DNA of 64,000 nucleotides, from positions 186,001 to 250,000 of IMG/VR virus record IMGVR_UViG_3300037086_000360. One strand, given 5' to 3'. Below are positions 3 to 54,752 of this stretch, one piece after another; position 1 is the stretch's first letter, and each line of letters begins with the position of its first letter. Both the position numbers and the translations under genes were made by a program. The notes beneath the pieces were generated by a model. The model did not search any database. It was given only the letters and a program-made list of their open reading frames with translations, and was not told where the DNA came from.

Positions 3-389
3 CAAGTGATAGTTGTAAGAAAAGATCTCAATATGAGAAAGGGCAAGATGGTAGCTCAAAGTTGTCATGCTTCAATGAAAGTGTTCTTCGATAGAATAAA
101 ATTTGTAACTGATCATGATGGTAGAAAATACTACGAGATTCCATTTATCTCTTCTCAAGTAGATGAATGGATAGGCGGTCTTTTTACTAAGATTGTTGTT
201 TCTGTTGATTCTGAGGAAGAAGTTCTTCAGCTTCAAAAGAAAGCGGATGAAGCAGGTATCATAAACGCAGTAGTGACTGATGCCGGACTCACAGAATTCC
301 ATGGAATTCCAACCATCACTTGTATTTCAATTGGACCAGATGATCCAGAAAAAATTGACAAGATTACTGGAGAACTACCTCTTCTATGA
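3..389 (+). CDS. pth2: Peptidyl-tRNA hydrolase, PTH2 family (5' end outside window)
   Basis: QVIVVRKDLNMRKGKMVAQSCHAS, TKIVV, DAGLTEF, TCISIGP are PTH2 signature motifs; frame is open to the left edge. Confidence 0.92.
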   Translation, partial: QVIVVRKDLNMRKGKMVAQSCHASMKVFFDRIKFVTDHDGRKYYEIPFISSQVDEWIGGLFTKIVVSVDSEEEVLQLQKKADEAGIINAVVTDAGLTEFHGIPTITCISIGPDDPEKIDKITGELPLL

Positions 390-610
390 TAGAAGAAGGG
401 TTGGAATGGCTGTCGCAGACAGATGAAGAAATTGTCGAAGAAGCCAAACGACTTTTATGTCCGTTGCCATTTACTCATTTTAACAATGTAACCGTACTTG
501 ATAAGAAGCACTTTCTTTTTTCTTTTGCCGACAATACATGCCAAATTGCAATTCTCGTAGGGGACATTGTTACGCTTGGACCAAGAATTCCGTTTGCTGA
601 ACGTACATGA
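386..610 (+). CDS. Hypothetical protein
   Basis: ORF overlaps the pth2 stop (ATGA). Confidence 0.55.
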   Translation: MIEEGLEWLSQTDEEIVEEAKRLLCPLPFTHFNNVTVLDKKHFLFSFADNTCQIAILVGDIVTLGPRIPFAERT

Positions 611-9388: not shown

Positions 9389-9605
9389 CTTTTTAGAAAG
9401 GAGAGGTGGAAGGTGTATGGTGCATGGCAAGGCAGGAAGTTTTTTGCTGGTCTTCACTACCTCGGAATAGGAAGCGGATACACTAACAGCATTCATATTC
9501 TTCCAATGATCGAAATCTATCCTTCATGCAAAATAGTATTTTTTGGATGGCTTTTGTTCCGGTGGCGTTGGGGTTGGAATAAAGAAGACAAGAGAAGATG
9601 AGACC

Positions 9606-9815
9606 ATGGCAAATATTTCTTTGAATTATGGTGCCATTGATCCTCAAATCTCATTTCCAGAAACACCGGGTACTATAGGCCTTCTTTACATCAAGGATGG
9701 CCGCTTCTTTATAAAGATGCATCAAAAATCTATCTATGGCGAAATTGAAGACATAGAAATACCTACATCTGACGATCTTCTATCTATTTTCGCAAAGATT
9801 CTCCTCAATCAATAA
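9606..9815 (+). CDS. Small protein, paralog of 41675-42184 (TIGLLYIKDG motif)
   Basis: Shared GTIGLLYIKDGR/DTIGLLYIKDGK and C-terminal AKILL. Confidence 0.65.
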   Translation: MANISLNYGAIDPQISFPETPGTIGLLYIKDGRFFIKMHQKSIYGEIEDIEIPTSDDLLSIFAKILLNQ

Positions 9816-12713: not shown

Positions 12714-13097
12714 ATGCGTGATGAAAAACCGCATGGCGAATATGTCTCGATGAAGCTCAGAAAGGAGTATGAAACGGACTTTCAGTCCATGATCGATAAG
12801 TGGTATGAGGTCAATTTAAGCTCAAACCGCTTCCTTGTTTGTATTGAGGGATTTGAGTGGAATGATTGGCATAAAGACTATTTGCTTCATGGCCATATTA
12901 TCAACTACAATAACAATAAAGCAGCAATGGTAGTCAGTGATTTTGGTAGATACTACTCCGAAATTAGAGAATCGTTTCCACTATGGAAACGCAAAAAAGT
13001 AAAGGACAAGAAGCTTCTAAAAGCGATCAATGTCGCCTTTTATGCTCAAACAGCAAAAGCTCTCTTGGGTGAAAGACATGAGCGAGAAACCTATTAA
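12714..13097 (+). CDS. Hypothetical protein (C-terminal AKALL)
   Basis: ORF after a GCATA motif. Confidence 0.6.
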   Translation: MRDEKPHGEYVSMKLRKEYETDFQSMIDKWYEVNLSSNRFLVCIEGFEWNDWHKDYLLHGHIINYNNNKAAMVVSDFGRYYSEIRESFPLWKRKKVKDKKLLKAINVAFYAQTAKALLGERHERETY

Positions 13098-22353: not shown

Positions 22354-22683
22354 TTGTTGATGACTAAGAAAACTCTCGAAAGATATGCATCCCAGATTAA
22401 TGCTCCACAATTAGACGATGATAAAGATTTGGTAGAAGAAGCCAAAATGCTTCTCGGCGACACAACATTCAGAATGTTGCCCAGGAGCAGTAGAATTTAT
22501 TACATGCGACTCTTCGTAAAACATCGCTTTTTCAAAGTTAGATGTCACAAATGCAGAAAAAGAGTCAATGATTTATATGATTTCATTCAATTCAAAAATC
22601 CTACATGGTGTATGGACTGTATGAGAAATGAGAGTCCAAATACTCTCTTTGAAATCAAGGAAAGCGTAGAGGAATTCATTTAG
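22354..22683 (+). CDS. Zn-finger hypothetical protein
   Basis: CHKC...CMDC. Confidence 0.55.
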   Translation: MLMTKKTLERYASQINAPQLDDDKDLVEEAKMLLGDTTFRMLPRSSRIYYMRLFVKHRFFKVRCHKCRKRVNDLYDFIQFKNPTWCMDCMRNESPNTLFEIKESVEEFI

Positions 22684-28687: not shown

Positions 28688-28688
28688 T

Positions 28689-30212: not shown

Positions 30213-30220
30213 GAGTTGGG

Positions 30221-31049: not shown

Positions 31050-31063
31050 GCATAGTTCTCTAT

Positions 31064-31710: not shown

Positions 31711-32090
31711 AAATGGAACCCGATAAAAAGGCAAAAATACTTCTGGAATACGGAAGTATGATTGTATATCTCAGAGAAAAACTCATTGATGTTGGAATCG
31801 ACGATTCAGAAGTTGAAGAACGCCTTACGACTTCTTTCTTTGATTTCATAGAACCAGAACAGGTGAGAGAGTCATACGATTCTGAAGAGCTTTCAGGTGA
31901 TCCAGAAGAAGCCACCTATGAAACATGGCATGATGCCTGGGAAGATAACAGTGATCCTCTTTGTCATAGACTTGCTGAAGAATACTCTCTAATGGTTTTC
32001 GACAGTGATGGAGACATGGAAGATGAATTAGTAAAATACATCATGAAGGTGGCTGTTGGTATTTCTGTGGATGGTGGTCCAAATGAATGA
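31707..32090 (+). CDS. Acidic hypothetical protein
   Basis: Coupled ORF. Confidence 0.6.
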   Translation: MKMEPDKKAKILLEYGSMIVYLREKLIDVGIDDSEVEERLTTSFFDFIEPEQVRESYDSEELSGDPEEATYETWHDAWEDNSDPLCHRLAEEYSLMVFDSDGDMEDELVKYIMKVAVGISVDGGPNE

Positions 32091-32794
32091 AGATAACTCT
32101 ACAAGACCTCATCAATCACGCAAAATCCTCTGACATAAAATGGCTCTATGAGATCAAGACTGTAAGTTGGCTCAAGGGGCTTCTCAACAATAAACTTGAC
32201 GAAGTCACAATCAGATTTCTTTGGAACAGAAATGACATTCATTGGGACATCGTCAGATACCAAAAGATTCCTTCTGACATGGTAAAAGATTTATTTGAAG
32301 ATTATATGGGCATGAGAAAGAAGAAGGGTGTCAATGCTGCCACTTTCAAACAAGCTATAGTCAGTCAAAATATAACTCCAGAGATTGTCAAGCTGACCGA
32401 AGACGTCAATAATTTTCCCAATGAAGCCTACTTCATGTTATGGAGTACTATTCCTGAAAAAATGGTTAAGATGGCCGACATCACAACTTTCATCAATAAC
32501 ATCAGTGATGTCACATATAAGGATTTTGGTTTCTATGTAAAGGAATCTCTCATAGCTCTTGTGAGAGAAGTTCCAGAGACCATGGTCACTGTGATGGAAA
32601 AGGTACTGGTTTCGAAAGATTTGTGTGAAGAAATCATTCCAACTCTTGGTAAGTTAGTGTTCTTCGATGATGAGACTATAGAACTCATTCGTCAAACAGT
32701 TGGAGTCATGACGTTTTATACATTCATGGAGCATCTCATTAGCAGAGACCATTGTTCTGTGAGTGCAAAAGCAAAATATCTTCTGAGTAAATAG
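32087..32794 (+). CDS. Hypothetical protein (C-terminal AKYLL)
   Basis: 235-aa coupled ORF. Confidence 0.65.
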   Translation: MKITLQDLINHAKSSDIKWLYEIKTVSWLKGLLNNKLDEVTIRFLWNRNDIHWDIVRYQKIPSDMVKDLFEDYMGMRKKKGVNAATFKQAIVSQNITPEIVKLTEDVNNFPNEAYFMLWSTIPEKMVKMADITTFINNISDVTYKDFGFYVKESLIALVREVPETMVTVMEKVLVSKDLCEEIIPTLGKLVFFDDETIELIRQTVGVMTFYTFMEHLISRDHCSVSAKAKYLLSK

Positions 32795-33085
32795 ATGAGT
32801 GTATTGAAAGTTATTGGTGAAGCATTGGAAAATAGATGGTTTGAAGTTCCTGAAAAAGATGGAATAGTATATGTTCGTCTTTCTGTAATCAACGACTATC
32901 TTGGAAGAGAAAAAATCACCTATTTCAGTGTTGCGTTTGATAAAGATCATAAGTTGTTTATGCCTCTGTTTTATAGAGGTCATGATTTTGAATACTTCGC
33001 ACAATTCAACGAAGTAGAAGATCAAGAGTTAGTTGTACAATTCACAGCCTTTGAAGCCAAATATTTACTTGGAGGAAAAGAATGA
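32795..33085 (+). CDS. Hypothetical protein (C-terminal EAKYLL)
   Basis: Paralog-like to 33082-33423 (N-terminal LxxIxEALxxxWF). Confidence 0.65.
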   Translation: MSVLKVIGEALENRWFEVPEKDGIVYVRLSVINDYLGREKITYFSVAFDKDHKLFMPLFYRGHDFEYFAQFNEVEDQELVVQFTAFEAKYLLGGKE

Positions 33086-33423: not shown

Positions 33424-33427
33424 TCAT

Positions 33428-33456
33428 TTTAGAGAGTATATTTTTTGTAGTACAAT
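33428..33456 (+). promoter_or_regulatory. Sigma70-like promoter
   Basis: TTTAGA-N17-TACAAT; same architecture at 35013-35041 and 30768-30797. Confidence 0.5.
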
Positions 33457-33474
33457 GATTATGGAGGAAGAACC

Positions 33475-33887: not shown

Positions 33888-34994
33888 ATGCCGATTACGA
33901 TCAAGGAACTAAAAGTCAATCTCAAGCTCGTCCTCAAAAAGGGAACGAAACAGCCTATCACCCCATATATTTGGGGAAAGCCGGGTATCGGAAAGTCGCA
34001 AGCTGTCAAGCAGATCGCCGATGAAATGGGAATTGGTTTCATCGACCTTCGTCTTTCACAGCTTGAATCTTCGGACCTTCGTGGTATCCCTGTTCCTGAT
34101 ATGGTGGCGGGTATCGCTCGTTGGCTTCCGCCCGAATTCATCCCCTTTCAGGGTGTAAAGGTTTACCAAAATACTTCCGGCATTCTCCTTCTCGACGAAT
34201 TGAACCGTGCAAGAACCGACGTTCTTCAGGCCGCCTTCCAGCTTGTTCTCGACCGCCAGGTCGGTATGCACAAGCTCATGGATTCCTGGTACATCGTTGC
34301 CGCCGGCAACCTCGGTATGGAAGACAAGACTGACGTCAATGAGTTCGACTCTGCCCTCAAGAACAGGTTCATCCACTTCACAGTGGATGTCAATCTCGAC
34401 ACTTGGGTGACATGGGCCCAGAAGGCGAATGTTCATCCTGATGTCATCAACTATCTCCAGGGAAAGCCCAATCACCTTTTCTACACGGTGAAGGAAGATG
34501 ACAATGTGTTCGTCACTCCTCGTTCTTGGGAAAAGTTTTCCGACATTCTCAAGCAGAATCCGGATGTCGATCCCAAGGAAATCACCCAGGCCATCGGTTC
34601 CGCAATCATCAATGGTTGTGCCGGCCACTTCATCAAGTACCTCGAGTCCAAGGAGATCATCTCTCCGAAAGACATCATCGACAAATATGACGAGGTGAAA
34701 AACAAGATCAAAGCACTTCAGCGTGATCAGGTTTACCAGCTCAACACCGAGTTGGCTTCCTACATCGTGAAGAGTTTGAATAAGGACGCCAACAAACCTC
34801 GCAGGACCAAGGCCCTCGAGTCCGTCCATCAGTACTGTCATGATCACCTGGAGAAGGACATCTACATCGCGTTCCTCCAGTCTCTCACCAAGTCGTGCAA
34901 TGGAGCTTCTCCGGTGAATGACTTCATGGACCTCTACCTGAAGAAATACATCGAGGATTCCAAACTGGTCATCAGCATCCTCAAGAAGAACTAA
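33888..34994 (+). CDS. MoxR/dynein-related AAA+ ATPase
   Basis: WGKPGIGKS, IDLRLSQ..DLRGIP, LLDELNRA, IVAAGN, ALKNRF, TPRSW. Confidence 0.92.
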   Translation: MPITIKELKVNLKLVLKKGTKQPITPYIWGKPGIGKSQAVKQIADEMGIGFIDLRLSQLESSDLRGIPVPDMVAGIARWLPPEFIPFQGVKVYQNTSGILLLDELNRARTDVLQAAFQLVLDRQVGMHKLMDSWYIVAAGNLGMEDKTDVNEFDSALKNRFIHFTVDVNLDTWVTWAQKANVHPDVINYLQGKPNHLFYTVKEDDNVFVTPRSWEKFSDILKQNPDVDPKEITQAIGSAIINGCAGHFIKYLESKEIISPKDIIDKYDEVKNKIKALQRDQVYQLNTELASYIVKSLNKDANKPRRTKALESVHQYCHDHLEKDIYIAFLQSLTKSCNGASPVNDFMDLYLKKYIEDSKLVISILKKN

Positions 34995-35003
34995 CCTCAA
35001 GCC

Positions 35004-35031
35004 GGGAGGGAGTTTAGAGACTCCCTCCCTT
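35004..35031 (+). terminator. Hairpin/terminator overlapping a sigma70-like promoter
   Basis: GGGAGGGAGT-TTAGAG-ACTCCCTCCC. Confidence 0.55.
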
Positions 35032-35057
35032 GTTGTATAATCTACATAGAGGTATTC

Positions 35058-35423
35058 ATGAAGCCGACAAAGAGATTTTCTCCAACCGATTTTTTCGAGA
35101 CGTATATTGTTGGAGATTCTGCCGACCAAGCAAAAATACTTCTTCTTCTGACAGCGATGAATGAGGAAGAACTTGCAAAGTTTGCTACTAGGATTTCTTC
35201 TTATGTCGTCAAAAGCAAAGATATTGAAGAAACTGAACACGAGAAGTATTCTCTTGTTCTCCATCGATTTTGTGAGGATCTGAACGATTTTTACTTTAAC
35301 AAGCTTTTGCGAGCGCTTATCCAAGCATGTCATTCGTCAAATCCTGTAAATCCATTTGTAGAGCATTATCTTAGCAAGTTTTCTGACGATGCAAAACGAG
35401 TTGTAATGACTCTCAAGGCATAG
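35058..35423 (+). CDS. Hypothetical protein
   Basis: GAGGT RBS. Confidence 0.6.
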   Translation: MKPTKRFSPTDFFETYIVGDSADQAKILLLLTAMNEEELAKFATRISSYVVKSKDIEETEHEKYSLVLHRFCEDLNDFYFNKLLRALIQACHSSNPVNPFVEHYLSKFSDDAKRVVMTLKA

Positions 35424-35442
35424 TTGATATAAAGAGGAAATA

Positions 35443-37254
35443 ATGGCAGTCACCAAAGAACAAATCAAAGAAAACGCCAAGAAGATGATTTCAGTCATCG
35501 ACAAGCTGACTAAGGTCAAGAGGGTCCGTCTCCCGGCTCGCGTTGAAGCAGTGTCGGTGAAGTGGGTTCGTGATGCTCCTTTCTTCTCGGAGTTCTTGAT
35601 GAGGTTCAACTACTTTGAGACTGAAGCAATTCCTACAATGGGAGTTAATTGCGTCAAGGGACGTATCAACCTCTATATCAACACTACGTTTATGAATGGT
35701 GGTGGTGAGTTCTACAAGTTTGACAAAGAAGGCAAACCCATTCTCAAGATGAAGGGTGGAAAACCACTTCTTGACGATCAGGGAAATGTCATCTACGAGA
35801 TGGAGCCTTGGAAGGGTCTCAATGATGACCAGCTTGAGGCAGTTCTTCTTCACGAAATCATGCATCTCATTCGTTGTCACCATGAGAGGACGCTTGAAGA
35901 CCCTTATGTTTTCAACGTCGCTGGGGACATGCTTATCAATGACGATTTGAAAACAATGCAGATCGGAAATCGTAAACCAACACTTCCTGACGGCGCCGTC
36001 TATCTCGACATGGCAAAGAAGGAAGGGTATAAGGATGAGCCCATCACTGAAAAGGTGTATGTGTGGCTCATTGATCAGCGTCAGAAATACATGAATGCAA
36101 TGCAGGACCTGATGAAACAGCAGGGAAAGCAGAGCGGCCAAAAACAGCAGTGTTCTCATTGTGGTGGTTCAGGAAAAGTTGATCAGGAATGCTCTGAGTG
36201 CGGTGGAAAGGGAACTACGAAGCCGAAGTGCCCAACCTGTGGTGGAACTGGCCAGAAGCAACAAAACCAGGGAAATCAGAAGCAGGATGGAAAGGGAAAG
36301 GGCAAAGATCAGAAAGATAAGGGCGACGGAAACCAACAGGGAGAAGGCCAAGGTCAGGGTGATCAGAAACAGGATCAGCAGGGTAGTGGTCAGGGACAGG
36401 GAGATCAGGAAGGTGATGGACAGGGAAGCTCTTGCCCCGACTGCCATGGAACTGGAAAAGACCAGAGCGGACAGGAAGTTCCTTGTCCAAGCTGCGGTGG
36501 AGGCGGTCACGAAGAAGGAAAATGCCCTCACTGTGGCGGAAGCGGCAATCAACGCGGTTCCGACTTGTTTGATGCAATGTACGGTTCCAAGATCGATGAC
36601 CACTCTTCAATGGAACAGAATGATGAACTGACTGAGGCAACTATTAGGGAAATCATCGAAACTGGAAAGATCCGCGGATGGGGCAACATTAGCGGAGAAG
36701 CGGTCGAGAAACTCGAAGAACTGACAAAACCATCCAAGATCTCTTGGAAGCAGATTCTCCGAAGGTATCTCACTGCGGCCATCCATGACGTTGGAAACAT
36801 CTACGAAAACTCTTGGTCCAAGAGAAACAGAAGGCAGCTTCCACTTCCTGGAATCAAGAAGCTCAACAACCGTGTCATCATCGGAATTGATACGTCTGGA
36901 TCCATTGGTAAGAAGGAATTTCAGATGTTCTTCACCGAAGTCGAGAGGATTGTCAAAGACACGTCCAACATCATTCTTCTCCAGTGGGATACGGAAATCA
37001 AAGATGTGAAACTTGGCTACAAGAAGGGCGACTGGAAGAAAATCGCAATCAAGGGCAGAGGAGGCACGGACGTCCAGAAGACTTTCGACTGGATGGTCGA
37101 AGAGAAATACACCACGTATCCACTCATCATGTTTACGGACGGTTATTTTGACCACAACTTCGACACTCGTGCTGTCAAGGTCGTATGGTGTGTCACCCAG
37201 AGCGAGAATAAGATCCCCGGGGGAGACAATATCTACATCGACATAGATGAATAG
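35443..37254 (+). CDS. Metallopeptidase-VWA (DUF2201-like) protein with inserted DnaJ-type zinc-finger repeats
   Basis: TMGV, LLHEIMH, FNVAGDMLIN, six CxxCxGxG repeats, IDDHS, IDTSGSI, GRGGTD, FTDGY. Confidence 0.9.
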   Translation: MAVTKEQIKENAKKMISVIDKLTKVKRVRLPARVEAVSVKWVRDAPFFSEFLMRFNYFETEAIPTMGVNCVKGRINLYINTTFMNGGGEFYKFDKEGKPILKMKGGKPLLDDQGNVIYEMEPWKGLNDDQLEAVLLHEIMHLIRCHHERTLEDPYVFNVAGDMLINDDLKTMQIGNRKPTLPDGAVYLDMAKKEGYKDEPITEKVYVWLIDQRQKYMNAMQDLMKQQGKQSGQKQQCSHCGGSGKVDQECSECGGKGTTKPKCPTCGGTGQKQQNQGNQKQDGKGKGKDQKDKGDGNQQGEGQGQGDQKQDQQGSGQGQGDQEGDGQGSSCPDCHGTGKDQSGQEVPCPSCGGGGHEEGKCPHCGGSGNQRGSDLFDAMYGSKIDDHSSMEQNDELTEATIREIIETGKIRGWGNISGEAVEKLEELTKPSKISWKQILRRYLTAAIHDVGNIYENSWSKRNRRQLPLPGIKKLNNRVIIGIDTSGSIGKKEFQMFFTEVERIVKDTSNIILLQWDTEIKDVKLGYKKGDWKKIAIKGRGGTDVQKTFDWMVEEKYTTYPLIMFTDGYFDHNFDTRAVKVVWCVTQSENKIPGGDNIYIDIDE

Positions 37255-38042: not shown

Positions 38043-38729
38043 ATGACACGAAGAATTATTCCGATTTTCGCCATGATTTTGGGGATGTTGGGATTGGTTC
38101 TCTTTTTGTTAGCTGCTGAGATATTACCAGACACTACTAAAGAGATCGTGTCTGAAGCCTCAAATTGGTTTGATAAAGCCCGCTATGAAAAATCTCTAAC
38201 AGATACTAGTAAATACTATACTGGTTTTCAAATTAATGAACAAATAGCGCGATTGTATAATCAAGTCAATTTTGTAGATTTTTATAACCAATTTATTCCA
38301 GACAGAGAGTTGATAAAAGCAACACTGCAGTATGGATTGAAATATAATGCTCCAATTAACTCTGCCTTCGCGCTTTGTAAGGGAGAGAGCCAGTTTAATC
38401 CAATGGCTTTTAATCGTAATACTAATGGAACAGTAGATAGAAGCTACTGGCAACTAAACAATGGTCATAGAAGAAATTGGAAGGTGGCTGATTTTTACAA
38501 CGTTTGGAAAGCTACTCCAGAAGCTCTTCGCCAATTCAGAGATTCAATTAATTTTGCCAACGACATTACTTTTGCATGGTTGACGTATAATATGGGAATG
38601 GGAGGAGCCAGGCCGTGGATAGCGGTCAAACAAATACCAGAGTTCAGAAAAGATTACATCAATGAAATTTCGGATTTTGAAGACATGCTCAATAAGGCTT
38701 TTAACGACGGATTGAAGAGATGGAATTAG
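38043..38729 (+). CDS. Lytic transglycosylase (SLT domain) with N-terminal membrane anchor
   Basis: ESQFNPMA.N.N.NGTVD..YWQLN, TYNMG. Confidence 0.82.
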   Translation: MTRRIIPIFAMILGMLGLVLFLLAAEILPDTTKEIVSEASNWFDKARYEKSLTDTSKYYTGFQINEQIARLYNQVNFVDFYNQFIPDRELIKATLQYGLKYNAPINSAFALCKGESQFNPMAFNRNTNGTVDRSYWQLNNGHRRNWKVADFYNVWKATPEALRQFRDSINFANDITFAWLTYNMGMGGARPWIAVKQIPEFRKDYINEISDFEDMLNKAFNDGLKRWN

Positions 38730-38941
38730 CAGTTGGAGACGTGATAAAAATCTCTGGTGCTATCTATATGATCGCCGCCATAAATACGAAGAAATCGTTA
38801 AAGAACCCGACTGTCACTATAATGGGTTTAGATGGTCAATATGAGGCGCACTATAAGTCTGTTTTGTCTGATGTCAGGGCTCGACACGTTATAGGAGAAA
38901 ACAATATAGCTAAGTGCTTGTTGATGTTTCGTAAAAAATGA
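38720..38941 (+). CDS. Hypothetical protein (C-terminal IAKCLL)
   Basis: Overlapping ORF. Confidence 0.5.
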   Translation: MELAVGDVIKISGAIYMIAAINTKKSLKNPTVTIMGLDGQYEAHYKSVLSDVRARHVIGENNIAKCLLMFRKK

Positions 38942-39097: not shown

Positions 39098-40033
39098 ATG
39101 ATATTATCTGAGTTGAAAAAAGTAAATTCAAAATACAAACCCCAACTTAAAGACAAAATTCAAATCACCCAATTCGTAAAAATAAAATGTGACAATAAAG
39201 AGTGCGGAAAGGAATGGGAAATATCATACTCTTACGTCTTGAAGGGACGAGAAACATATGGTAGAGATCTTTGCTATTCTTGTAAATTGAAAGAACAATA
39301 TAAAAGGGGTTTGAGAGAAGAGCAGAGAATAAAGTTAGCAGAAAGAAATGTTGAAAACTCTGGAAAAACATACGAAGAAATTTATGGTACAAAGAAGGCT
39401 GAAAAATTCAAGAAAAAATTATCGAATTCAAATTCTGGAGAAAATAATCCTAATTTTGGTGGTCTTTATTCACATGGGTTTAGAGATAGGCCCCTCAACA
39501 TAAAAGGTAAATCATTCGAAGAAATATATGGTGATGAAAGAGCTGGTGAATATAAGAAAAAACTTTCAAAAGCTTCTTCGGGTGAGAACAATGGAATGTA
39601 TGGAAAACCATCTCCACAAGGTTCTGGAAATGGTTGGTCTGGGTGGTACAAAGCAAAGTATTTCAGAAGTCTTTTAGAGCTTTCATTTATAGTCAATGTG
39701 TTAGAAAAACAGAAATTACTATGGGACACTGGAGAAATAGCTAAATACAATATTCCATATGTAGATTACAAAGGAACTAATAGGAGTTATTATCCAGATT
39801 TTGTAATAGAGAATAGTGTTGTTGTTGAAATAAAACCCCACAATCTGAGAAATAGTAAAGATATATTGTTGAAGGAAGAGGCTGCAAAAAAGTGGTGTAA
39901 AAAGCATAATTTTGAATATAGAATCATAGACGAAGTGGAACGCCTTTCTGATGAAGAAATTAGAACACTTCATGATAATGAGTTAGTTAGATTCATAGAT
40001 CGATATGAGGAGAAATTCAAAAGATGCTATTAA
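39098..40033 (+). CDS. Free-standing homing endonuclease (NUMOD3-like repeats plus TnsA-like PD-(D/E)xK domain)
   Basis: Repeated GKxxEEIYG..KKKLS..SGENN; FRSLLE, YYPDF, VEIKP. Confidence 0.82.
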   Translation: MILSELKKVNSKYKPQLKDKIQITQFVKIKCDNKECGKEWEISYSYVLKGRETYGRDLCYSCKLKEQYKRGLREEQRIKLAERNVENSGKTYEEIYGTKKAEKFKKKLSNSNSGENNPNFGGLYSHGFRDRPLNIKGKSFEEIYGDERAGEYKKKLSKASSGENNGMYGKPSPQGSGNGWSGWYKAKYFRSLLELSFIVNVLEKQKLLWDTGEIAKYNIPYVDYKGTNRSYYPDFVIENSVVVEIKPHNLRNSKDILLKEEAAKKWCKKHNFEYRIIDEVERLSDEEIRTLHDNELVRFIDRYEEKFKRCY

Positions 40034-40671: not shown

Positions 40672-40980
40672 ATGAACTTGGACGAAAAAGACATTCTAGA
40701 ATCTAAGAATGATTTTGATAAATGGCTCGAGGAAATGCGTCAAGAAAGTGTTGATAGAGTTGAAAAGAATCGTCTTGAATACGAGGCCTATCTCGCTGCT
40801 GGTGGTTGTGCTCATAGCAAATGCATACCAATTTATGACAGTGAGAGAGTTAGAAAAAAAATTATGAGTGCTGAAGAGGTGAGAAGACTTTATCCTCGTT
40901 TTTTTGGCAATTGTCCAGACTGCGGACAACAACTCATTCAATATGCTTCATTTGAACACTATTTGGCTGGTGATTGGTGA
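40672..40980 (+). CDS. Hypothetical Zn-binding protein
   Basis: YPRFFGNCPDCG..YASFEHYLAGDW. Confidence 0.65.
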   Translation: MNLDEKDILESKNDFDKWLEEMRQESVDRVEKNRLEYEAYLAAGGCAHSKCIPIYDSERVRKKIMSAEEVRRLYPRFFGNCPDCGQQLIQYASFEHYLAGDW

Positions 40981-41267
40981 TGTTCGATTGCAGGCAGAAG
41001 GACTGTCCAAATCATCCTGAATATGTTTCGGAACCAGCAAATCTTGAAAATGAAACGAATTTCAAACATAAATTCAGAGAAGCTGCATTGAAAAACCATT
41101 ATAGTAATCAAACATTGAGTTGGGAAAATCTATCAGAAGCTGCTGGATGGATTAAGTTGGATGGGATCAGAATCTCCACCGAATGTTTGATTTGTGTGCA
41201 TTGTCCAAAAATAGATGTTCGTGAAATCAAAATCGCAGCATTAGCAAAAGATTATCTAAGAAAATGA
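40974..41267 (+). CDS. Small Cys-rich protein (AKxxL C-terminal family)
   Basis: CxxxxCPxH and CxxC; paralog of the next gene. Confidence 0.65.
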   Translation: MVMFDCRQKDCPNHPEYVSEPANLENETNFKHKFREAALKNHYSNQTLSWENLSEAAGWIKLDGIRISTECLICVHCPKIDVREIKIAALAKDYLRK

Positions 41268-41656
41268 AAATACTAGAATGTGATAAAATGGACTGTCCAG
41301 CTCATTCAAAATATGTAAATCCTGAACCACCGGTAGTTCCAACTGGAATCTATTCGAGTACTACTGGAACATATTCTGCTGCGGTTGGTGGCGGAGGTGC
41401 AGGTTCAGGTGGTTTGATGGGCGTGGTCGTTGGTGGAGGTGGGGGTGCTGGAGTCATGACAATTAATGGTGTTCCATCATACGTCAGTAGCTTATCTTGG
41501 CCACAAATATCCGCAGTTCCACAAGAAAAACAAATATATCTCTGTTTTGGAGAAATCAGAGTCCATCCTGCCTGTCTTATGTGTTCCAATCTTCCAAAAA
41601 TGGATATGAGAGAGGTTCAAATAGCCGAAAAAGCTAAGACAATGTTGGAGAGATGA
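41264..41656 (+). CDS. Small Cys-rich protein with Gly-rich insert (AKxxL family)
   Basis: CDKMDCPAH, CLMC; paralog of the preceding gene. Confidence 0.65.
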   Translation: MKILECDKMDCPAHSKYVNPEPPVVPTGIYSSTTGTYSAAVGGGGAGSGGLMGVVVGGGGGAGVMTINGVPSYVSSLSWPQISAVPQEKQIYLCFGEIRVHPACLMCSNLPKMDMREVQIAEKAKTMLER

Positions 41657-41674
41657 CCTCTTGGAGAAAATAAA

Positions 41675-42184
41675 ATGTCGAATACAAATAGTAATACGCC
41701 TTCCTATTCTGTTTCTATTGGTGCTTCCATACTTGGTGGTGTTACAAACAGTGCTTCTTCTTCACTCAATGTTGGAGTCGATTATGCCTCCGGTAGTAGT
41801 CAATCTGACTATACGACATACACGACTACGACTACTAATACCACCAATGTAATTTATGGTCAACAGGTTGGTGGTGGATGGCAGTGGCAACAGACTGGTT
41901 CAACAATATGGCCGTACAATCCTTCAACCACTCAACCAATTATCACAATAACTCCAGGAGTCATTTCAATTCCTTCTGTTTGGCCTCTACCTCCAAAATG
42001 GCCTGAAAATCTTCCTGATACAATTGGTCTCCTTTACATAAAAGATGGAAAGCTAATGATGATGACGGAAGAGGGTGTGGAAGTAGAACTTCTTGACCTA
42101 TCTACTGCAGAAGGTGAAACTGCTCAAATTCTCATAGCCATTGCAGCCAAGAAAAAACTTTCCGAAGGAACTCCAGCAAAATAA
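41675..42184 (+). CDS. Ser/Thr-rich protein with TIGLLYIKDG domain (AKxxL family)
   Basis: GGAG RBS; paralog of 9606-9815. Confidence 0.65.
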   Translation: MSNTNSNTPSYSVSIGASILGGVTNSASSSLNVGVDYASGSSQSDYTTYTTTTTNTTNVIYGQQVGGGWQWQQTGSTIWPYNPSTTQPIITITPGVISIPSVWPLPPKWPENLPDTIGLLYIKDGKLMMMTEEGVEVELLDLSTAEGETAQILIAIAAKKKLSEGTPAK

Positions 42185-42426
42185 TGAGCTATAAGGATAA
42201 TTGGCCGAAGGACGCCATTGCCTGGGGAGACATCAATTCAGACGACAACTCCTACAACGTAAGGGTTCATTATTTGCCAAGTAGAAATATTTTTGTGATT
42301 TCTCCAGATCCTATGTATGCTGTGCCAATTATTGATTTAAACAAGGATCCTGACAACGAAGTGGCAAAAAGACTATTGGCCCTCATAGCAAAAAGAGTGA
42401 TCAATCAATCAAATGAGAAGACATAA
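42184..42426 (+). CDS. Small protein (AKxxL family)
   Basis: C-terminal LLALIAKRVI. Confidence 0.6.
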   Translation: MSYKDNWPKDAIAWGDINSDDNSYNVRVHYLPSRNIFVISPDPMYAVPIIDLNKDPDNEVAKRLLALIAKRVINQSNEKT

Positions 42427-42646
42427 AGTTCACTGGTATGAATCAAATTCTTGGTGGTACGCCGAAGTTAAAGGCAGACTCCAAAAAAATCTAATTGGTG
42501 AGATTTTCTTTGAAAATGGTTATGTTGTACTATATCACGACAATCCTCGACAGAAAATAGTCCTTGGCAAGATAGAAAATGATAGTGGGATTGCAAAGAA
42601 GCTTACCACTCACATCGCAAAAACGATGTTGGAAAAAAACGAATGA
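42413..42646 (+). CDS. Small protein (AKxxL family)
   Basis: IGEIFFENG; LTTHIAKTML. Confidence 0.6.
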   Translation: MRRHKVHWYESNSWWYAEVKGRLQKNLIGEIFFENGYVVLYHDNPRQKIVLGKIENDSGIAKKLTTHIAKTMLEKNE

Positions 42647-42879
42647 AACTAAAAGAGTATGTCAAATCGCTTCAAAAGGATCCGTCTAGTGATATACCTA
42701 CGATGGGTGATCCTTCTCCAGAAGGATTGGGCTCTATATTCACAATAGCAGGAAAGTTGTGTATGATCAATCATGATGAGGTAACTGAAATAGGTGATAT
42801 AGAAGACATAGATGAAACGATAGAAAATTTGACCGTGTATATTGCGAAAGAGCTACTGAAGGGAAAGAAAAGAAATTGA
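42643..42879 (+). CDS. Small protein (AKxxL family)
   Basis: LTVYIAKELL. Confidence 0.6.
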   Translation: MKLKEYVKSLQKDPSSDIPTMGDPSPEGLGSIFTIAGKLCMINHDEVTEIGDIEDIDETIENLTVYIAKELLKGKKRN

Positions 42880-43178
42880 GCAGAAAATTACCACAGCCAC
42901 TGCCTGGAGGCATAAGGAAACCAACACCTCCACCTGCCCCTCCAAGAACTGTAACTCCAAAGAACATGAAAAAGAACCCATGGCTGCTCAAATTTAATGA
43001 ATTACATGATCCAAGCTATTTAGGAGAGCTCCATTTTGAAAATGGACATCTTATTCTGCATCAACCGGATCACCCATACGCAGAAGAAGTAAAAATAGAT
43101 TTAGGTGATCTTAATAATTCTGAGGGCATGCAACAGGTCCTCACTACTGTTATAGCAAAAAGACTGTTGATAAAGTAA
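42876..43178 (+). CDS. Small Pro-rich protein (AKxxL family)
   Basis: LGELHFENG; LTTVIAKRLL. Confidence 0.6.
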   Translation: MSRKLPQPLPGGIRKPTPPPAPPRTVTPKNMKKNPWLLKFNELHDPSYLGELHFENGHLILHQPDHPYAEEVKIDLGDLNNSEGMQQVLTTVIAKRLLIK

Positions 43179-46536: not shown

Positions 46537-46848
46537 ATGTTCGATAAAAAAATAGAAATCGCTTGGCGTCGGACTGGAAAGAAACAATACCCCTTACAGA
46601 GTCAAGTTTGTCTCATCTACTTCGCTCATACTGGATTCAGCGTTAGCGAGTATGAAGAACAACCTGATTCTATCGATTATGGAGATGGAAATAAATACAC
46701 AGTACATGTTTTTGTAGATCTGGGTGGTTGGCTGGGTGATGAAGATCTTCTTTGGATTCCGATCGCCGAGCTTCCAGCAGTAGGATCATTTCAACACATT
46801 GTGATACCGGAAGATTATTCGAGAGACTGTGCCCGTGAGAAGGATTAA
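46537..46848 (+). CDS. Hypothetical protein
   Basis: ORF in gene string. Confidence 0.5.
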   Translation: MFDKKIEIAWRRTGKKQYPLQSQVCLIYFAHTGFSVSEYEEQPDSIDYGDGNKYTVHVFVDLGGWLGDEDLLWIPIAELPAVGSFQHIVIPEDYSRDCAREKD

Positions 46849-47111
46849 AAACCAAACAGCGTCTGGATTGCGAACTGCATATCTAAAGAAGTGATTTCAT
46901 TAGCATCAGAGTGAATTTGGTCCCAATTTGGCTTGTAAGAAAGATCCCTATTGACTCTAGTTTCTTCTTTAGATATGATGTAAAGATGGTATCGAACTAA
47001 ATGTGGTTCAACTGCTTTTATGAAATAAACAAACGCACTATAGCTTTCTTCTACTGTTTTATTGACGAAAAGATATAGTGTCATTCCTGGTTTGAGTTGT
47101 CCAAATTTCAT
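46845..47111 (-). CDS. Small protein, paralog family MKFxxLKPGM (copy 4)
   Basis: MKFGQLKPGMTLY...AIQTLF. Confidence 0.7.
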   Translation of the reverse strand: MKFGQLKPGMTLYLFVNKTVEESYSAFVYFIKAVEPHLVRYHLYIISKEETRVNRDLSYKPNWDQIHSDANEITSLDMQFAIQTLFGF

Positions 47112-47117
47112 TTAATT

Positions 47118-47420
47118 CTATCCATTCTTATCGAATAATGATGTGATTACTACTCGCATTTGTCCAGTTTGGATTTCTTTTGCTGAACCATTCGTCAAAA
47201 TCCACCCCTTTACCCACGCTTTTTCATTGAAGGTTTGAGTTATTCTCTTAGGAGAGTCCACCTCATGCCCATTATTGATTATGATGCGATCATAGACTAC
47301 ATATTCTGAGGTCTTTTCTTTAATGAATTCGAGATAGAGAATGTAACCGCTCGTGATTGTTGAGTTATCAACTAGATCATAGAGAATCATTCCTGGGCTT
47401 AGATCTTTGAAGTTTATCAT
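47118..47420 (-). CDS. Small protein, paralog family MKFxxLKPGM (copy 3)
   Basis: MINFKDLSPGMILY...VITSLF. Confidence 0.7.
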   Translation of the reverse strand: MINFKDLSPGMILYDLVDNSTITSGYILYLEFIKEKTSEYVVYDRIIINNGHEVDSPKRITQTFNEKAWVKGWILTNGSAKEIQTGQMRVVITSLFDKNG

Positions 47421-47725
47421 GTGGTACTATCGAAAATTGCTTTCACTGCGAACCTACAGTCTCTATTATCAGCCTCTTCTGCTGTTCCATGATCTATGTT
47501 CCAATGCATGTGGTCTGCCATACTATTGGGATTTACCGTAATGTATTGAGGAAGATTGAAGCCTTTTCCAGTGACGCCATTGCTGACTATATATTGATTA
47601 TATGTGGCTATATCAACTGTTTTCTTTTTGATGAAATACAAATAGATCTTATAGCCGCCAGTAGTTGCAGCATGGTCTATTGTATCAATTAGTACCATTC
47701 TAGATTTCAATTCGTTAAATTTCAT
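47417..47725 (-). CDS. Small protein, paralog family MKFxxLKPGM (copy 2)
   Basis: MKFNELKSRMVLI...AVKAIF. Confidence 0.7.
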   Translation of the reverse strand: MKFNELKSRMVLIDTIDHAATTGGYKIYLYFIKKKTVDIATYNQYIVSNGVTGKGFNLPQYITVNPNSMADHMHWNIDHGTAEEADNRDCRFAVKAIFDSTT

Positions 47726-48002
47726 AATCTCCAAAAACACCTTTGATTATGATTTTGTATTTTTCAGGAACAAGCGGCACTAATCGCAACATTCTGTCAT
47801 TCCATACTTTGATTTCTGATTCAGGTTCATCTGAGAGCGATTGTTCATGATAAATTGTTAGGAAATACCCCCAAACGAGATGCGCTTCTGAATGTTTTCT
47901 TTTCACGAAAAAAACATTAGCCCAAGCTAAAGTTTTAGTTTCTTTGTCTAAGTATTGTGAATACCAAAGAATCATTCCTGGTTTCACTTCTTTGAATTTC
48001 AT
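47715..48002 (-). CDS. Small protein, paralog family MKFxxLKPGM (copy 1)
   Basis: MKFKEVKPGMILW...IIKGVF. Confidence 0.7.
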   Translation of the reverse strand: MKFKEVKPGMILWYSQYLDKETKTLAWANVFFVKRKHSEAHLVWGYFLTIYHEQSLSDEPESEIKVWNDRMLRLVPLVPEKYKIIIKGVFGDYEI

Positions 48003-48544
48003 TATGGTTCATAAACCTCAATCTTGTTTCTAAATTTGTCGATTCCATTAATCTTCTGAACATAATCCCTCAAGAAACAAGTCAAAGCATAGGCATCTAC
48101 GCAGTTGTCATCGGGTAGGATAACTCCACCCTTATATTTCTTTGATGGGATGTCGAGATTCATCTGTACTGCTCTCGCAATCATCATATCCTTACCAGCA
48201 TTTCCCTTGCCAGTCCAATATTGTTTCACCACTGTTGGTGGAACAACCATAAAATTGATGGCTTCCTTGATAAACATTTCTCTAATCATGTATGCTAAAG
48301 CACCCAATTCAGCGATTCTGCCGTGAGAACCAAACGAAATTCCCTCCATGGCAGCCCAATTGACTCCAGATGTCTTGCAGAGATCTCTAATTTCGTCTCT
48401 AATCTCCATAAGTCTGAAAGTGTAGTCAATGCTTCTTTCTTCGTCTGGATCTTTTGATGTTGCAAAAATTGAAAAACGAGGTGGATCGGAATAAATGCAG
48501 CAGCCCGTTCCTGAAAGACTCTGATCGACGCCGAGAAGTATCAT
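48002..48544 (-). CDS. ruvC: RuvC-like Holliday junction resolvase
   Basis: LGVDQSLSGTG, AMEG, VKQYWTGKGNAGK, DNCVDAYAL. Confidence 0.85.
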   Translation of the reverse strand: MILLGVDQSLSGTGCCIYSDPPRFSIFATSKDPDEERSIDYTFRLMEIRDEIRDLCKTSGVNWAAMEGISFGSHGRIAELGALAYMIREMFIKEAINFMVVPPTVVKQYWTGKGNAGKDMMIARAVQMNLDIPSKKYKGGVILPDDNCVDAYALTCFLRDYVQKINGIDKFRNKIEVYEP

Positions 48545-48620
48545 GTTGTCACCTTTCTTTTGAGACATATAGATTACCTTTACCCGGTAAAGATAATAGA
48601 AGTAGGAAAGCAGAAACAAA

Positions 48621-48974
48621 ATGGAAAAACATGAAATTCCAAGAGCCAAAGTTGGTCAGTATTATGTGGAAATGAGATCAGGAGAAGTGGCTCGAGAGTT
48701 CTATGTAATAGACATGGACGGCAGTAGAATCTACGGAATTATGATAGCGCACGTTCCAACTCACGTTTTGAATGCTACCATTCAACCGCGGACTCTTATA
48801 GACTTCCACGATTCTATGGATTACGAGGGAGGCTGGAGGAAGGGCCAGACTGTTTTTACAGGTCAGCATGGTGAAAAGAGACCATTTCCAGAGGATTTCA
48901 ACCATAGAATAATCAGAGCAGTTTTTAATTACACCATCATCAATGGTGAGAATATTTCATTGGGGAACAAATGA
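48621..48974 (+). CDS. Hypothetical protein
   Basis: After AAGATAA; near-terminal RIIRAVF. Confidence 0.6.
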   Translation: MEKHEIPRAKVGQYYVEMRSGEVAREFYVIDMDGSRIYGIMIAHVPTHVLNATIQPRTLIDFHDSMDYEGGWRKGQTVFTGQHGEKRPFPEDFNHRIIRAVFNYTIINGENISLGNK

Positions 48975-49309
48975 AGTTTGAACCGCCTTTTGAAAAATAC
49001 TTGGGAATTTTTTTGACGACCCATCGCACCATGGGAAAAGACACGGTGGTTTATTTGACACATAAAAAAATTGAAAAACAACGGAAATTTGGAACAGAAG
49101 CATATGAAAGCGAGTATACTATAGCGTTTATCTTCTATTTCAACGATCCCGACATATTCACCACAGATGAGATTTTTGATTTTGAAAATGAAAACACTAA
49201 CGTTGGTCAAAAATCCGAATGGCACGAAATGACTTCTTCTGAAATAAATCTCATAACTAAAAAAATGGTAGAAGCCTTATTTGAAAATCGATGGAAAGAG
49301 CACTTATAA
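48971..49309 (+). CDS. Hypothetical protein (paralog of next gene)
   Basis: MKFEPPFEKYLGIFLTTH...KKMVEALF. Confidence 0.65.
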   Translation: MKFEPPFEKYLGIFLTTHRTMGKDTVVYLTHKKIEKQRKFGTEAYESEYTIAFIFYFNDPDIFTTDEIFDFENENTNVGQKSEWHEMTSSEINLITKKMVEALFENRWKEHL

Positions 49310-49310
49310 T

Positions 49311-49592
49311 ATGAAATTTGAAGAGCCCTACAATAAATATATAGGAAAGTTTTTCCAAACAACCCATGCTCCTGGTAAGAATGTAATGGTTACATTTATC
49401 CTAAAGATGCATGAATCAAAATCAGATACTGCTGATGCCACCATGCTTTGGGATGCCGAGGATGTGAGAGACGAAGTGAGTCTCACAACCTTCAATTTCA
49501 AGGTCGAAAGCAACACTGATCAGCCATGGATGGAAGTTGAACAGCCTCTTTCTTACCCAAAGAGAATGATAAAAGGACTGTTCAAAGCATAA
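49311..49592 (+). CDS. Hypothetical protein (paralog of preceding gene)
   Basis: MKFEEPYNKYIGKFFQTTH...KRMIKGLF. Confidence 0.65.
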   Translation: MKFEEPYNKYIGKFFQTTHAPGKNVMVTFILKMHESKSDTADATMLWDAEDVRDEVSLTTFNFKVESNTDQPWMEVEQPLSYPKRMIKGLFKA

Positions 49593-49602: not shown

Positions 49603-50283
49603 ATGAATAGGTACTCAGCCTCCAAAATAAAAACGTTTGAGACATGTAGACTGCAATTCAAACTACACTATATTGAAAACATCGAAGTAGAAAAACCAGT
49701 CTCACCAGACACAGAATTTGGTTCTCTCATCCACAAAGCAGCAGAGATTTATAATGGATCCAATCTCACTGAAGTGGTAAAGCTTACAAGAGATTACCAT
49801 CTCAATGAAGCATACAAGAGAGAAATAGCCCACACATTAAGAAATCTTTTTGTGTTCAGTCAGAAATACAAACACGTCGATGAAAAAAGAGAGCTTGAAA
49901 TTGAATGGAAAACGGATGACATTTGGTTATATGGCTTTGCCGACAAGTTGATCGATAATAACCAACTCATTTGCATTGACTACAAAACAGCAAAATACGC
50001 CGACACTTCAAGATTCATGTTCCAAATGAGACTCTATAATCTCATCCTCTCTCACGTCTATCAAAAAGATCCCGACAAAATCAGATTTGTTGTCTATTTT
50101 CCAAGAATAGATACTGAAGAGAAGATTCTTTTTTCAAAGAAGGAAATCATTCTCTTTGAGAGTGACATAAGGAAAAAGATCACTACAATAGAATCTAACA
50201 CCGATTGGAACCCAGCTCCTGGATACCATTGTAGATGGTGTCAATACTGTAAAGGCACCAATTGTGATGTTGGAAAGTGTTAG
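49603..50283 (+). CDS. PD-(D/E)xK exonuclease (RecB/Cas4-like)
   Basis: SASKIKTFETC, GSLIHKAAE, GFADK, IDYKT, QMRLY, CRWCQYC..C. Confidence 0.88.
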   Translation: MNRYSASKIKTFETCRLQFKLHYIENIEVEKPVSPDTEFGSLIHKAAEIYNGSNLTEVVKLTRDYHLNEAYKREIAHTLRNLFVFSQKYKHVDEKRELEIEWKTDDIWLYGFADKLIDNNQLICIDYKTAKYADTSRFMFQMRLYNLILSHVYQKDPDKIRFVVYFPRIDTEEKILFSKKEIILFESDIRKKITTIESNTDWNPAPGYHCRWCQYCKGTNCDVGKC

Positions 50284-50292
50284 GAGAACAAA

Positions 50293-51725: not shown

Positions 51726-51735
51726 AAGATACCCT

Positions 51736-54544: not shown

Positions 54545-54557
54545 GGGGAATACAAAA

Positions 54558-54719: not shown

Positions 54720-54752
54720 GGAATAGGGCCCTTGAGGGCCCTTTTAACTATA

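Follow-up and report, generated by a model that had tools for sequence, protein, structure and literature searches.

A short sequence signature, Ala-Lys-x-Leu-Leu (AKxLL), predicted to form a helix, is carried at the very start or the very end of about one in eight small proteins of a huge phage and its relatives, on otherwise unrelated bodies, and looks like a portable protein-binding module, although no partner was identified. We analyzed a window of 64,000 nucleotides (positions 186,001 to 250,000 of IMG/VR record IMGVR_UViG_3300037086_000360) together with the whole 250-kb phage genome (G000, 88% complete), four related huge phages (G001, which is 98% complete, G002, G003, and G005), and a 44.6-kb fragment from another relative (G006). 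The initial annotation of this window had listed twelve small proteins sharing a C-terminal helix of this kind, seven of them encoded by consecutive ORFs, and all twelve endings are present in the sequence, so that the observation is confirmed and proves to be much larger than was reported (Table 1).

Table 1. Motif-carrying ORFs in the 64-kb window (positions are those of the window).
Position	Strand	Protein	Terminal sequence or motif	Supporting data
40974..41267 (alternative start 40980)	+	ORF1, 95-97 aa, Cys-rich family A7	ends IKIAALAKDYLRK; motif at 41244-41258	C4, D8, C9, C69, C72, D79, A89, K90, and L93 invariant in A7
41264..41656	+	ORF2, 130 aa, Cys-rich family with a Gly-rich insert	ends VQIAEKAKTMLER; motif at 41633-41647	hhalign to A7 prob 99.9; to the three-strand-plus-helix family only 16 helix columns
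41675..42184	+	ORF3, 169 aa, T/S/N/G/W-rich low-complexity N-terminal part plus C-terminal three-strand-plus-helix domain	ends IAIAAKKKLSEGTPAK	HMM from external relatives only, E 1.7e-13
42184..42426	+	ORF4, 80 aa, three-strand-plus-helix domain	helix carries VAKRLL and LIAKRVI	same HMM, E 1e-5; hhalign prob 97
42413..42646	+	ORF5, 77 aa, three-strand-plus-helix domain (the protein that was modelled)	motif A69-L73 at 42617-42631	predicted strands 30-34, 37-42, 47-53; predicted helix 57-76
42643..42879	+	ORF6, 78 aa, three-strand-plus-helix domain	ends TVYIAKELLKGKKRN	same HMM, E 1.3e-7; hhalign prob 98
42876..43178	+	ORF7, 100 aa, Pro-rich N-terminus plus three-strand-plus-helix domain	ends TTVIAKRLLIK	same HMM, E 4e-3; hhalign prob 99.5
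9543..9815	+	Eighth member of the three-strand-plus-helix family; a 69-aa form starts at 9606	ends LSIFAKILLNQ	same HMM, E 2.4e-7
12714..13097	+	127-aa ORF, body unrelated	C-terminal AKALLGE motif (AQTAKALLGE...)	
32087..32794	+	235-aa conserved protein	ends SAKAKYLLSK	G001 ortholog ends MKARFLLEK
32795..33085	+	96-aa ORF, body unrelated	ends AFEAKYLLGGKE	
38720..38941	+	73-aa ORF, body unrelated	ends NIAKCLLMFRKK	
31713..32090	+	125-aa ORF	N-terminal motif MEPDKKAKILLEYG, residue 7	
35058..35423	+	121-aa ORF	DQAKILLLL near the N-terminus, residue 25	conserved in L012, a 732-kb relative
22360..22683	+	107-aa ORF	VEEAKMLLGD, residue 28	
386..610	+	74-aa ORF	VEEAKRLLCP, residue 20	

First, the frequency of the motif was compared with shuffled sequences, since a lack of enrichment at C-termini had been named beforehand as the outcome that would refute the observation. 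In the whole 250-kb genome, AK.LL occurs 62 times in 499 proteins, against 2.8±1.7 in shuffles, and is the most over-represented dispersed gapped tetrapeptide in the proteome. The looser pattern AK..[LI] lies within the last 20 residues in 37 of 499 proteins, against 6.5±2.6 in residue shuffles (max 15 of 1000). The enrichment survived when paralog clusters were collapsed and only the tails were shuffled, with 27 clusters versus 7.8±2.7 for this pattern and 16 clusters versus 0.6±0.8 for AK.LL. In contrast, the control patterns SK..L, GK..L, LK..L, AE..L, EK..L, and AK..V/F were not enriched. In an unbiased scan of gapped tripeptides in the last 20 residues, AK..L ranked first (33 vs 9.9, p 5e-9). 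However, the motif is not specific to C-termini but is as common at N-termini, which the initial annotation had not seen. AK.LL also lies in the first 35 residues of 33 proteins (23 clusters), versus 0.8±0.9 expected, and its positions form one peak 0-9 residues before the stop and a second at residues ~7-11 after the start.

The motif recurs in the four related huge phages, with 52 occurrences versus 3.3 in G001, 14 versus 1.6 in G002, 20 versus 1.1 in G003, and 19 versus 1.4 in G005, whereas no motif was found in the 76 genes of the G006 fragment and the T4 early region showed no enrichment (1 vs 0.4). The proteins themselves turn over between genomes, since only 100 of the 499 proteins have a G001 homolog, yet motif density is kept. 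The alanine, lysine, and leucine are among the very few invariant columns in three separate families, beside the zinc ligands.

The possibility that the peptide is a by-product of a promoter, ribosome-binding, or recombination sequence at gene junctions, or of chance, was considered because the motif sits close to gene boundaries and because residues after C-terminal motifs are often encoded by purine-rich codons that overlap the ribosome-binding site of the next gene. This explanation is refuted by the reading frame. The degenerate DNA pattern occurs 62 times in frame 0 but 7 times and once in the other frames, 5 times in intergenic DNA, and 3 times on the reverse strand. All Ala codons, both Lys codons, and all Leu codons are used, third codon positions carry ≤0.32 bit (except Lys AAR, where only A or G is possible), flanking nucleotides carry little information, and shuffles never approached the observed counts. 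Selection therefore acts on the protein.

The seven consecutive ORFs fall into two families, the Cys-rich ORF1-2 and ORF3-7, the latter being paralogs of one domain family rather than the several families suggested by the initial annotation. ORF3-7 and the ORF at 9543 share a ~50-residue three-strand-plus-helix domain with metagenomic relatives, and were recovered by a profile built from external relatives only. ORF1-2 align to this family over only 17 helix columns (prob 17%), which does not support a single paralogous family comprising all seven ORFs, and profile comparisons between families in general align only 7-17 motif columns. An HMM built from the seven ORFs recruited only the eighth member at E<0.01, so that this profile does not recover all C-terminal carriers; a further hit in the profile search, the Big_13 repeat protein P0009, looks like a compositional or strand-pattern match and was set aside. 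A cluster at genome 183-184 kb is remotely related to the ORF3-7 family (prob 69% over 50 columns).

Structure prediction gave a confident helix in both terminal contexts, at residues 57-76 after three strands in ORF5 (pLDDT 80-90) and at residues 3-11 in a C4 zinc-ribbon family that has 11 genes in this genome (pLDDT 84), and the helix was modelled with the highest confidence of each protein. For ORF3-7 the helix is thus not a loose tag but is modelled as part of a conserved fold. A homodimer model of ORF5 residues 24-77 obtained a score of 0.57 versus 0.04 for the best control, a mark that was reached by 20 of 30 proteins solved as pairs of one chain and by 1 of 23 solved as single chains. 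The three runs shared 100% of their contacts and the pLDDT of the partner was at least 79, although this prediction covered one family only, homodimers only, and rested on a single modelling job with a shallow alignment of our own. In the predicted symmetric dimer, the first strands of the two copies pair, and helix residues I60, A61, L64, I68, A69, and M72 pack across the interface, of which I68, A69, and M72 belong to the motif. The two invariant residues of the family beyond Met1, G29 and A69, both lie in the predicted interface.

Based on these results, our tentative reading is that the AKxLL signature is the conserved core of a short amphipathic helix that this lineage of huge phages uses as a portable protein-protein association element. 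In this view, it is the last helix of a domain predicted to dimerize in ORF3-7, in the protein encoded at 9543-9815, and, remotely, in the 183-184 kb cluster, and paralogs with the same interface residues could therefore also pair with each other; the same helix would sit at residues ~3-11 of other small proteins, such as the zinc-ribbon family, one N-terminal-motif protein of which is encoded at genome 138070-138348, and at the C-terminal end of many further unrelated bodies. The enrichment, the selection at protein level, the conservation across the lineage, the modularity, and the helical models are results of the analysis, whereas it is by inference that the helix is taken to mediate self- or hetero-association in all families rather than docking on one outside hub, and any cleavage or ClpXP-dependent degradation of the carriers would be inferred from sequence likeness alone. 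Several facts speak against this reading. The nearly invariant Lys (K70) and L73 are not among the confident interface residues, so that dimerization alone does not explain why Lys is kept. The tight positional modes, with a start at residue 7 in 19 of 29 N-terminal cases in G001 and exactly 2 residues after the motif in 9 of 28 C-terminal cases in the present genome, look more like recognition of a free end than a packing need, and the convergence of independent families on the same five residues is easier to explain by one shared partner.

The initial annotation had interpreted the seven and five proteins as diverse cargo or adaptors whose shared terminal motif binds a common hub, such as an AAA+ ATPase, protease, or scaffold, and this interpretation is only partly supported: the motif is strongly enriched, selected at protein level, and placed on bodies of different families, but no hub was found. 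Docking on one phage or host partner remains possible, albeit doubtful. It is favored by the presence of the same five residues on ≥25 unrelated bodies at either free end, by the sharp positional modes, by the position of the nearly invariant Lys outside the predicted dimer interface, and by the turnover of carriers between genomes while motif density is kept. Conserved candidate hubs lie among carriers in the window, namely an AAA protein of 799 aa, a DUF2201_N peptidase of 295 aa, and a VWA-like protein of 507 aa, as well as a MoxR-like AAA of 368 aa with a DUF2201 protein of 603 aa; a ClpP-like protein is also among the conserved core proteins; other candidates are the prohead core and a host AAA+ protease or chaperone (a ClpX-type terminal degron or a DnaK site). 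On the other hand, the G006 fragment has MoxR and DUF2201 but lacks the motif, the helix of ORF3-7 is modelled inside the fold and interface rather than as a free peptide, and packaging or degrading 12-20% of the proteome through one tag would be unusual. The FtsH and Hsp70 of the phage itself were rejected as a conserved hub, since Peptidase_M41 and HSP70 were found in G000 only and are absent from the nearly complete G001, which carries the motif just as often. A literature search for hub genes and another for AKxLL gave nothing relevant.

A further alternative is a purely intramolecular helix that caps or packs on the body of each protein and was spread by descent, as new small genes arose by partial duplication of gene ends or by shifts of gene boundaries within tandem arrays, with no common partner and no pairing code. 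Carriers do lie in tandem arrays of tightly packed, often overlapping small genes, and the remote homology of the 183-184 kb cluster and the high model confidence of the helix are consistent with this view. We nevertheless regard it as unlikely, because synonymous sites are randomized while A, K, and LL stay invariant over genomes sharing only 21-76% protein identity, implying strong purifying selection on exactly these residues, including a Lys, and because very different folds (zinc ribbon, three-strand-plus-helix, and helical bodies) would not need the same capping sequence.

Comparison with described systems revealed partial likenesses. The encapsulation peptides of bacterial microcompartment (BMC) cargo are likewise short amphipathic helices at either terminus of otherwise unrelated proteins that serve one shared interaction, and the predicted helices at residues 3-11 of the zinc-ribbon family and 57-76 of ORF5 agree with this feature. 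However, their consensus differs, the helix of ORF3-7 is modelled inside the fold rather than on a linker, and a search for BMC shell proteins (PF00936) found a match in 0 of 5 genomes, while the control genomes responded. The capsid-targeting sequence of T4 internal proteins is an N-terminal peptide of about 10 residues on diverse small proteins that is cut by the prohead protease gp21 after L/I-x-E. In the present genome Glu follows the motif, giving L-L-E, in 14 of 38 N-terminal cases, and G001 encodes a gp21-type protease (S77, E 5.5e-22) and a gp23-type capsid protein (Gp23, E 1.4e-71), which were not found in G000, which is 88% complete, nor in G002, G003, and G005. About 40% of the cases are C-terminal and do not fit such a signal, carriers are far more numerous than in T4, and there is no evidence of cleavage or packaging. 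ClpX reads short degrons at either free end (three N-terminal and two C-terminal classes), and the lambda O tag TNTAKILNFGR contains AKIL (PMC12723719), but degrons are unstructured and loosely defined, whereas the A, K, and LL are here near invariant and modelled as a helix. In poxviruses, the C-terminal PRANC/F-box-like motif is placed on dozens of diverging ankyrin paralogs so that they dock on one hub; this is a eukaryotic host system with a different motif and an identified hub.

The topology of three antiparallel strands plus a C-terminal helix resembles DNA-binding domains of the lambda and HPI integrase arm-binding, AP2, and NUMOD4 types, which were returned by three different searches, although all matches are weak (Foldseek E 0.6-1.8, VIA Z 3.0-3.8, atlas TM 0.46-0.53). 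DNA binding was considered on this basis, but is not supported by these weak matches, and many family members are acidic by our own reading of the sequences. Pfam and PHROGs searches gave nothing for the seven ORFs or for ten N-terminal-motif proteins, nucleotide and protein searches of the phage collection gave no match, word-based protein searches returned only the query itself or the close lineage, and an ESM Atlas feature search was uninformative.

Most genes of huge phages are small orphans with no handle for study, whereas this motif marks about 60-100 of them per genome, is about 15- to 20-fold over-represented, and is kept while the proteins turn over, so that it gives a direct experimental entry point to how a large share of the accessory proteome is organized and a simple sequence marker for recognizing this phage lineage and its accessory genes in metagenomes. 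A more far-reaching reading, which we consider unlikely on present evidence, is that AKxLL is a five-residue helical address, readable at either protein end, that directs roughly 12-20% of the proteome, mostly fast-evolving accessory proteins, to one destination, which could be the prohead core (giving a large arsenal of injected proteins), a phage AAA+/VWA/metallopeptidase machine, or a host protease or chaperone. If true, this would be a viral sorting code comparable to microcompartment encapsulation peptides. With respect to gene order, from which no conclusion was drawn, C-terminal carriers followed directly by N-terminal carriers occur 3 times in the present genome, but the order is reversed in G001.

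The analyzed window corresponds to bases 186001-250000 of a single 250,111-bp virus contig that is rated 88% complete. Using our own ORF caller, we identified 499 genes in this genome, 473 of which are located on the + strand. The genome encodes DnaB, FtsH, a radical-SAM lysine-aminomutase-like protein, thymidylate kinase, and NifU, as well as several functions that are unusual cargo for a phage, namely a Pol III alpha (DnaE) split into two ORFs with an intein fragment and a UDG/PHP front, a complete Hsp70, and large PAS histidine kinase/response-regulator hybrids. In addition, homologs of two counter-defence proteins were found: Tad6, a Thoeris inhibitor (E 1e-39), and an Apyc1-like metallo-beta-lactamase (anti-Pycsar). 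The Tad6 homolog contains a ~100-residue insertion carrying an internal AKELLL that is also present in the ortholog from the related phage G001. Nucleotide and protein searches of the phage collection returned no match to the genome. The positions of the features discussed below are collected in the table.

First, the C-terminal AKxxL endings proposed in the initial annotation were verified: all seven consecutive ORFs (ORF1-7) and the five distant ORFs terminate as it described. The AK..[LI] pattern lies within the last 20 residues of 37 of the 499 proteins, compared to 6.5+-2.6 in shuffled sequences. After joining the paralogs detected by BLAST and HMM and shuffling only the tails, the count was 27 clusters versus 7.8+-2.7 for this pattern and 16 clusters versus 0.6+-0.8 for AK.LL. 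Seven of ten control patterns were not enriched, whereas the reverse pattern, AR..[LI], and AA..[LI] were only mildly raised. For AR..[LI], 8 C-terminal occurrences were observed versus 3.7, and two 73-aa paralogs in the window end with an Arg variant of the motif (NRARKYLDGNKED, IKARKALAEEEGK). In an unbiased scan of gapped tripeptides in the last 20 residues, AK..L ranked first.

The motif is, however, proteome-wide and two-ended. AK.LL occurs 62 times in the genome versus 2.8+-1.7 expected, and it is the most over-represented gapped tetrapeptide that is dispersed over many proteins. Only CP.CG scored a higher ratio, which we attribute to Cys/Gly repeats like those seen in the DUF2201 protein. 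One positional peak of AK.LL lies 0-9 residues before the stop, with a mode of exactly two residues after the motif, whereas the other lies near the start, with a mode at residue 7 (M-x5-AKxLL). In the first 35 residues, the motif was found in 33 proteins (23 clusters), compared to 0.8+-0.9 expected. The corresponding degenerate DNA pattern occurs 62 times in coding frame 0, in contrast to 7 and 1 occurrences in the other frames, 5 intergenic occurrences, and 3 on the reverse strand. Third codon positions carry at most 0.32 bit, except for Lys AAR, where only A or G is possible, and all synonymous codons are used. Selection therefore acts on the peptide, and an origin of the motif in a DNA-level signal or by chance is considered very improbable.

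A profile of the C-terminal domain identified 20 proteins among 1.84 billion at E<=0.001. Excluding one spurious repeat protein (P0009), these are the window's own proteins, their orthologs, and more distant metagenomic relatives. They share the module P-x-x-[LI]-G-x-[IL]-[YF]-[VI]-x-[DN]-G ... [IL]-x-L-G ... I-A-K-[KR]-L-L and have variable, often T/S/N/W-rich, N-terminal parts. In ORF3 and many relatives (P0007, P0012, and P0015-P0020), the N-terminal parts are T/S/N/G/W/Y-rich low-complexity segments. As in the genome studied here, the genes of the relatives lie after thymidylate kinase, and the orthologs keep the motif. In the window, a NUMOD3/TnsA-like endonuclease gene sits just upstream of thymidylate kinase, and GIY-YIG/NUMOD3 genes interrupt the syntenic region in the closest relative, L012 (JGI Ga0673036_0000002). 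The latter lies on a 732-kb contig, three times the size of this genome, that could be a concatemer or a much larger phage.

Whole related records were then fetched and tested for the motif. In G001 (388 kb, 30% GC, 98% complete), AK.LL was observed 52 times versus 3.3+-1.9 expected. The observed and expected counts were 14 and 1.6 in G002 (178 kb), 20 and 1.1 in G003 (159 kb), and 19 and 1.4 in G005 (131 kb). In contrast, G006, a 44.6-kb fragment with 76 genes, had 0 versus 0.2 expected, and the first 50 kb of T4, used as a control, had 1 versus 0.4. G001 shares only 100 of the 499 proteins with this genome, at 21-79% identity. Of its 52 motifs, 27 are N-terminal and 18 are C-terminal; with the slightly wider pattern AK.[LIFYMV]L, 19 of 29 N-terminal cases start at residue 7. 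The motif is thus a trait of the lineage that is kept while the carrier proteins turn over.

Profile comparisons were used to establish how many families carry the motif. An HMM built only from external relatives recovered ORF3-7 and an additional ORF in the window (E 1.7e-13 to 4e-3), but neither ORF1 nor ORF2. ORF1 and ORF2 form a Cys-rich family with counterparts in the records L011 and L012, and profile-profile comparison of this family with ORF3-7 aligned only 17 helix columns (prob 17%). A zinc-ribbon family with the pattern M-x5-AKxLL-x3-CxxC...C...CxxW has 11 genes here and 11 in G001, and it aligns to ORF3-7 over 11 motif columns only. A cluster outside the window is a probable remote member of the ORF3-7 domain family (prob 69%, 50 columns). 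Across 66 carriers surveyed, the other families match over only 7-15 motif columns, apart from four low-probability partial matches to the ORF3-7 domain (36-56 columns, prob <=15%). In each of the three aligned families, A, K, and L are among the few invariant columns, beside the Cys ligands. A purely structural motif spread by descent is regarded as an unlikely explanation.

Structural models were obtained for representatives of two of these families. The predicted ORF5 monomer has a disordered N-terminus, three strands (residues 30-34, 37-42, and 47-53), and a helix at residues 57-76, with pLDDT of about 80-90 in the domain. Fold searches gave only weak matches, which recur on the integrase arm-binding, AP2, and NUMOD4 type of three-strand-plus-helix domain. 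The model of the zinc-ribbon family has a helix at residues 3-11 (pLDDT 84) before a less confident ribbon. A homodimer model of ORF5 residues 24-77 scored 0.57, compared to 0.04 for the best of three controls. That mark was reached by 20 of 30 proteins solved as pairs of one chain and by 1 of 23 solved as single chains, although these counts hold only roughly since our own alignment was used. The three runs shared 100% of their contacts, and the partner's pLDDT was at least 79. The predicted interface consists of the paired first strands (24-35), residues 38-40, and helix residues 57-62, 64-65, 68-69, and 71-72. It includes the invariant G29 and A69, whereas K70 and L73 are not listed.

Candidate hubs were assessed by their distribution across the lineage. 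The phage FtsH, a full-length protein with FtsH_ext, AAA, and M41 domains, and Hsp70 occur in this genome but not in G001. A ClpP-like gene occurs in both genomes; here the ClpP-like (S14) match spans an in-frame TAG between two called ORFs, and the G001 ortholog likewise shows one TAA, which could reflect programmed readthrough or frameshift, or two separate genes. The block conserved across the lineage within the window holds two sets of an AAA+ ATPase with a DUF2201_N metallopeptidase and a VWA-like domain, which are among the best conserved genes of the lineage. The second member of one set, a 603-aa protein, has HExxH and Cys/Gly-rich CxxCGG repeats that, by our reading of the sequence, resemble the DnaJ zinc finger. 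The block also holds a REC protein and a STAS protein, interleaved with five motif carriers. However, G006 has the MoxR/DUF2201 pair but no motif. G001 has a T4-type capsid protein and prohead protease, the latter a 295-aa ORF carrying an AKQLL in its C-terminal extension, whereas no such head genes were found in the 88%-complete genome studied here. No BMC shell genes are present. None of these observations identifies a partner.

Based on these results, we concluded that the observation made in the initial annotation is confirmed and greatly extended. Its interpretation, a modular terminal motif that binds a common hub, is only partly supported: the motif is modular and clearly functional, but for ORF3-7 it is the core of a folded domain's last helix and of a predicted dimer interface, and no hub is shown. 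The enrichment, the selection on the peptide, and the modularity follow from the sequence analyses, whereas the fold and the dimer rest on models, and any association or docking by the helix is inferred. The reading we tentatively favor is a portable association helix that mediates self- or hetero-pairing, while docking on one common partner ranks second and remains doubtful. The nearly invariant Lys outside the modelled interface and the sharp distance of the motif from the free ends are the main unexplained points, and they keep the hub reading alive.

Positions of features in the phage genome and its relatives. Window and genome positions refer to the phage studied here; our labels L001 to L004 accompany genome positions.
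Record	Position	Strand	Feature
Window	9543-9815		Additional member of the ORF3-7 family
Window	10873-12705 and 13850-14947		Phage FtsH, near a radical-SAM lysine-2,3-aminomutase-like gene
Window	16809-17808		ClpP-like (S14) match
Window	25399-30212		AAA+/metallopeptidase/VWA set
Window	33888-37254		AAA+/metallopeptidase/VWA set whose second member has HExxH and CxxCGG repeats
Window	39098-40033		NUMOD3/TnsA-like endonuclease gene
Window	41675-42000		Low-complexity N-terminal part of ORF3
Window	46845-49592	both	Paralog family with a different C-terminal signature
L012	14413-17457		Same paralog family in the close relative
Window	56196-56417 and 56769-56990		Two paralogs with the Arg variant
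Genome	10764-11522 (L001) and 34643-35578 (L002)		Tad6 homolog; Apyc1-like metallo-beta-lactamase
Genome	21171-33708 (L002), 73154-75043 (L004), 52159-55260 (L003)		Split Pol III alpha; Hsp70; PAS histidine kinase/response-regulator hybrids
Genome	183-184 kb		Cluster, probable remote member of the ORF3-7 domain family
G001	49994-53214		T4-type capsid protein and prohead protease

A second paralog family, comprising proteins of ~90-117 aa, shares a different C-terminal signature, [IV]-[KRT]-[GAS]-[LIV]-F followed by 2-5 residues (TLFGF, SLFDKNG, AIFDSTT, GVFGDYEI, GLFKA, and AVFNY), and is conserved in the close relative.
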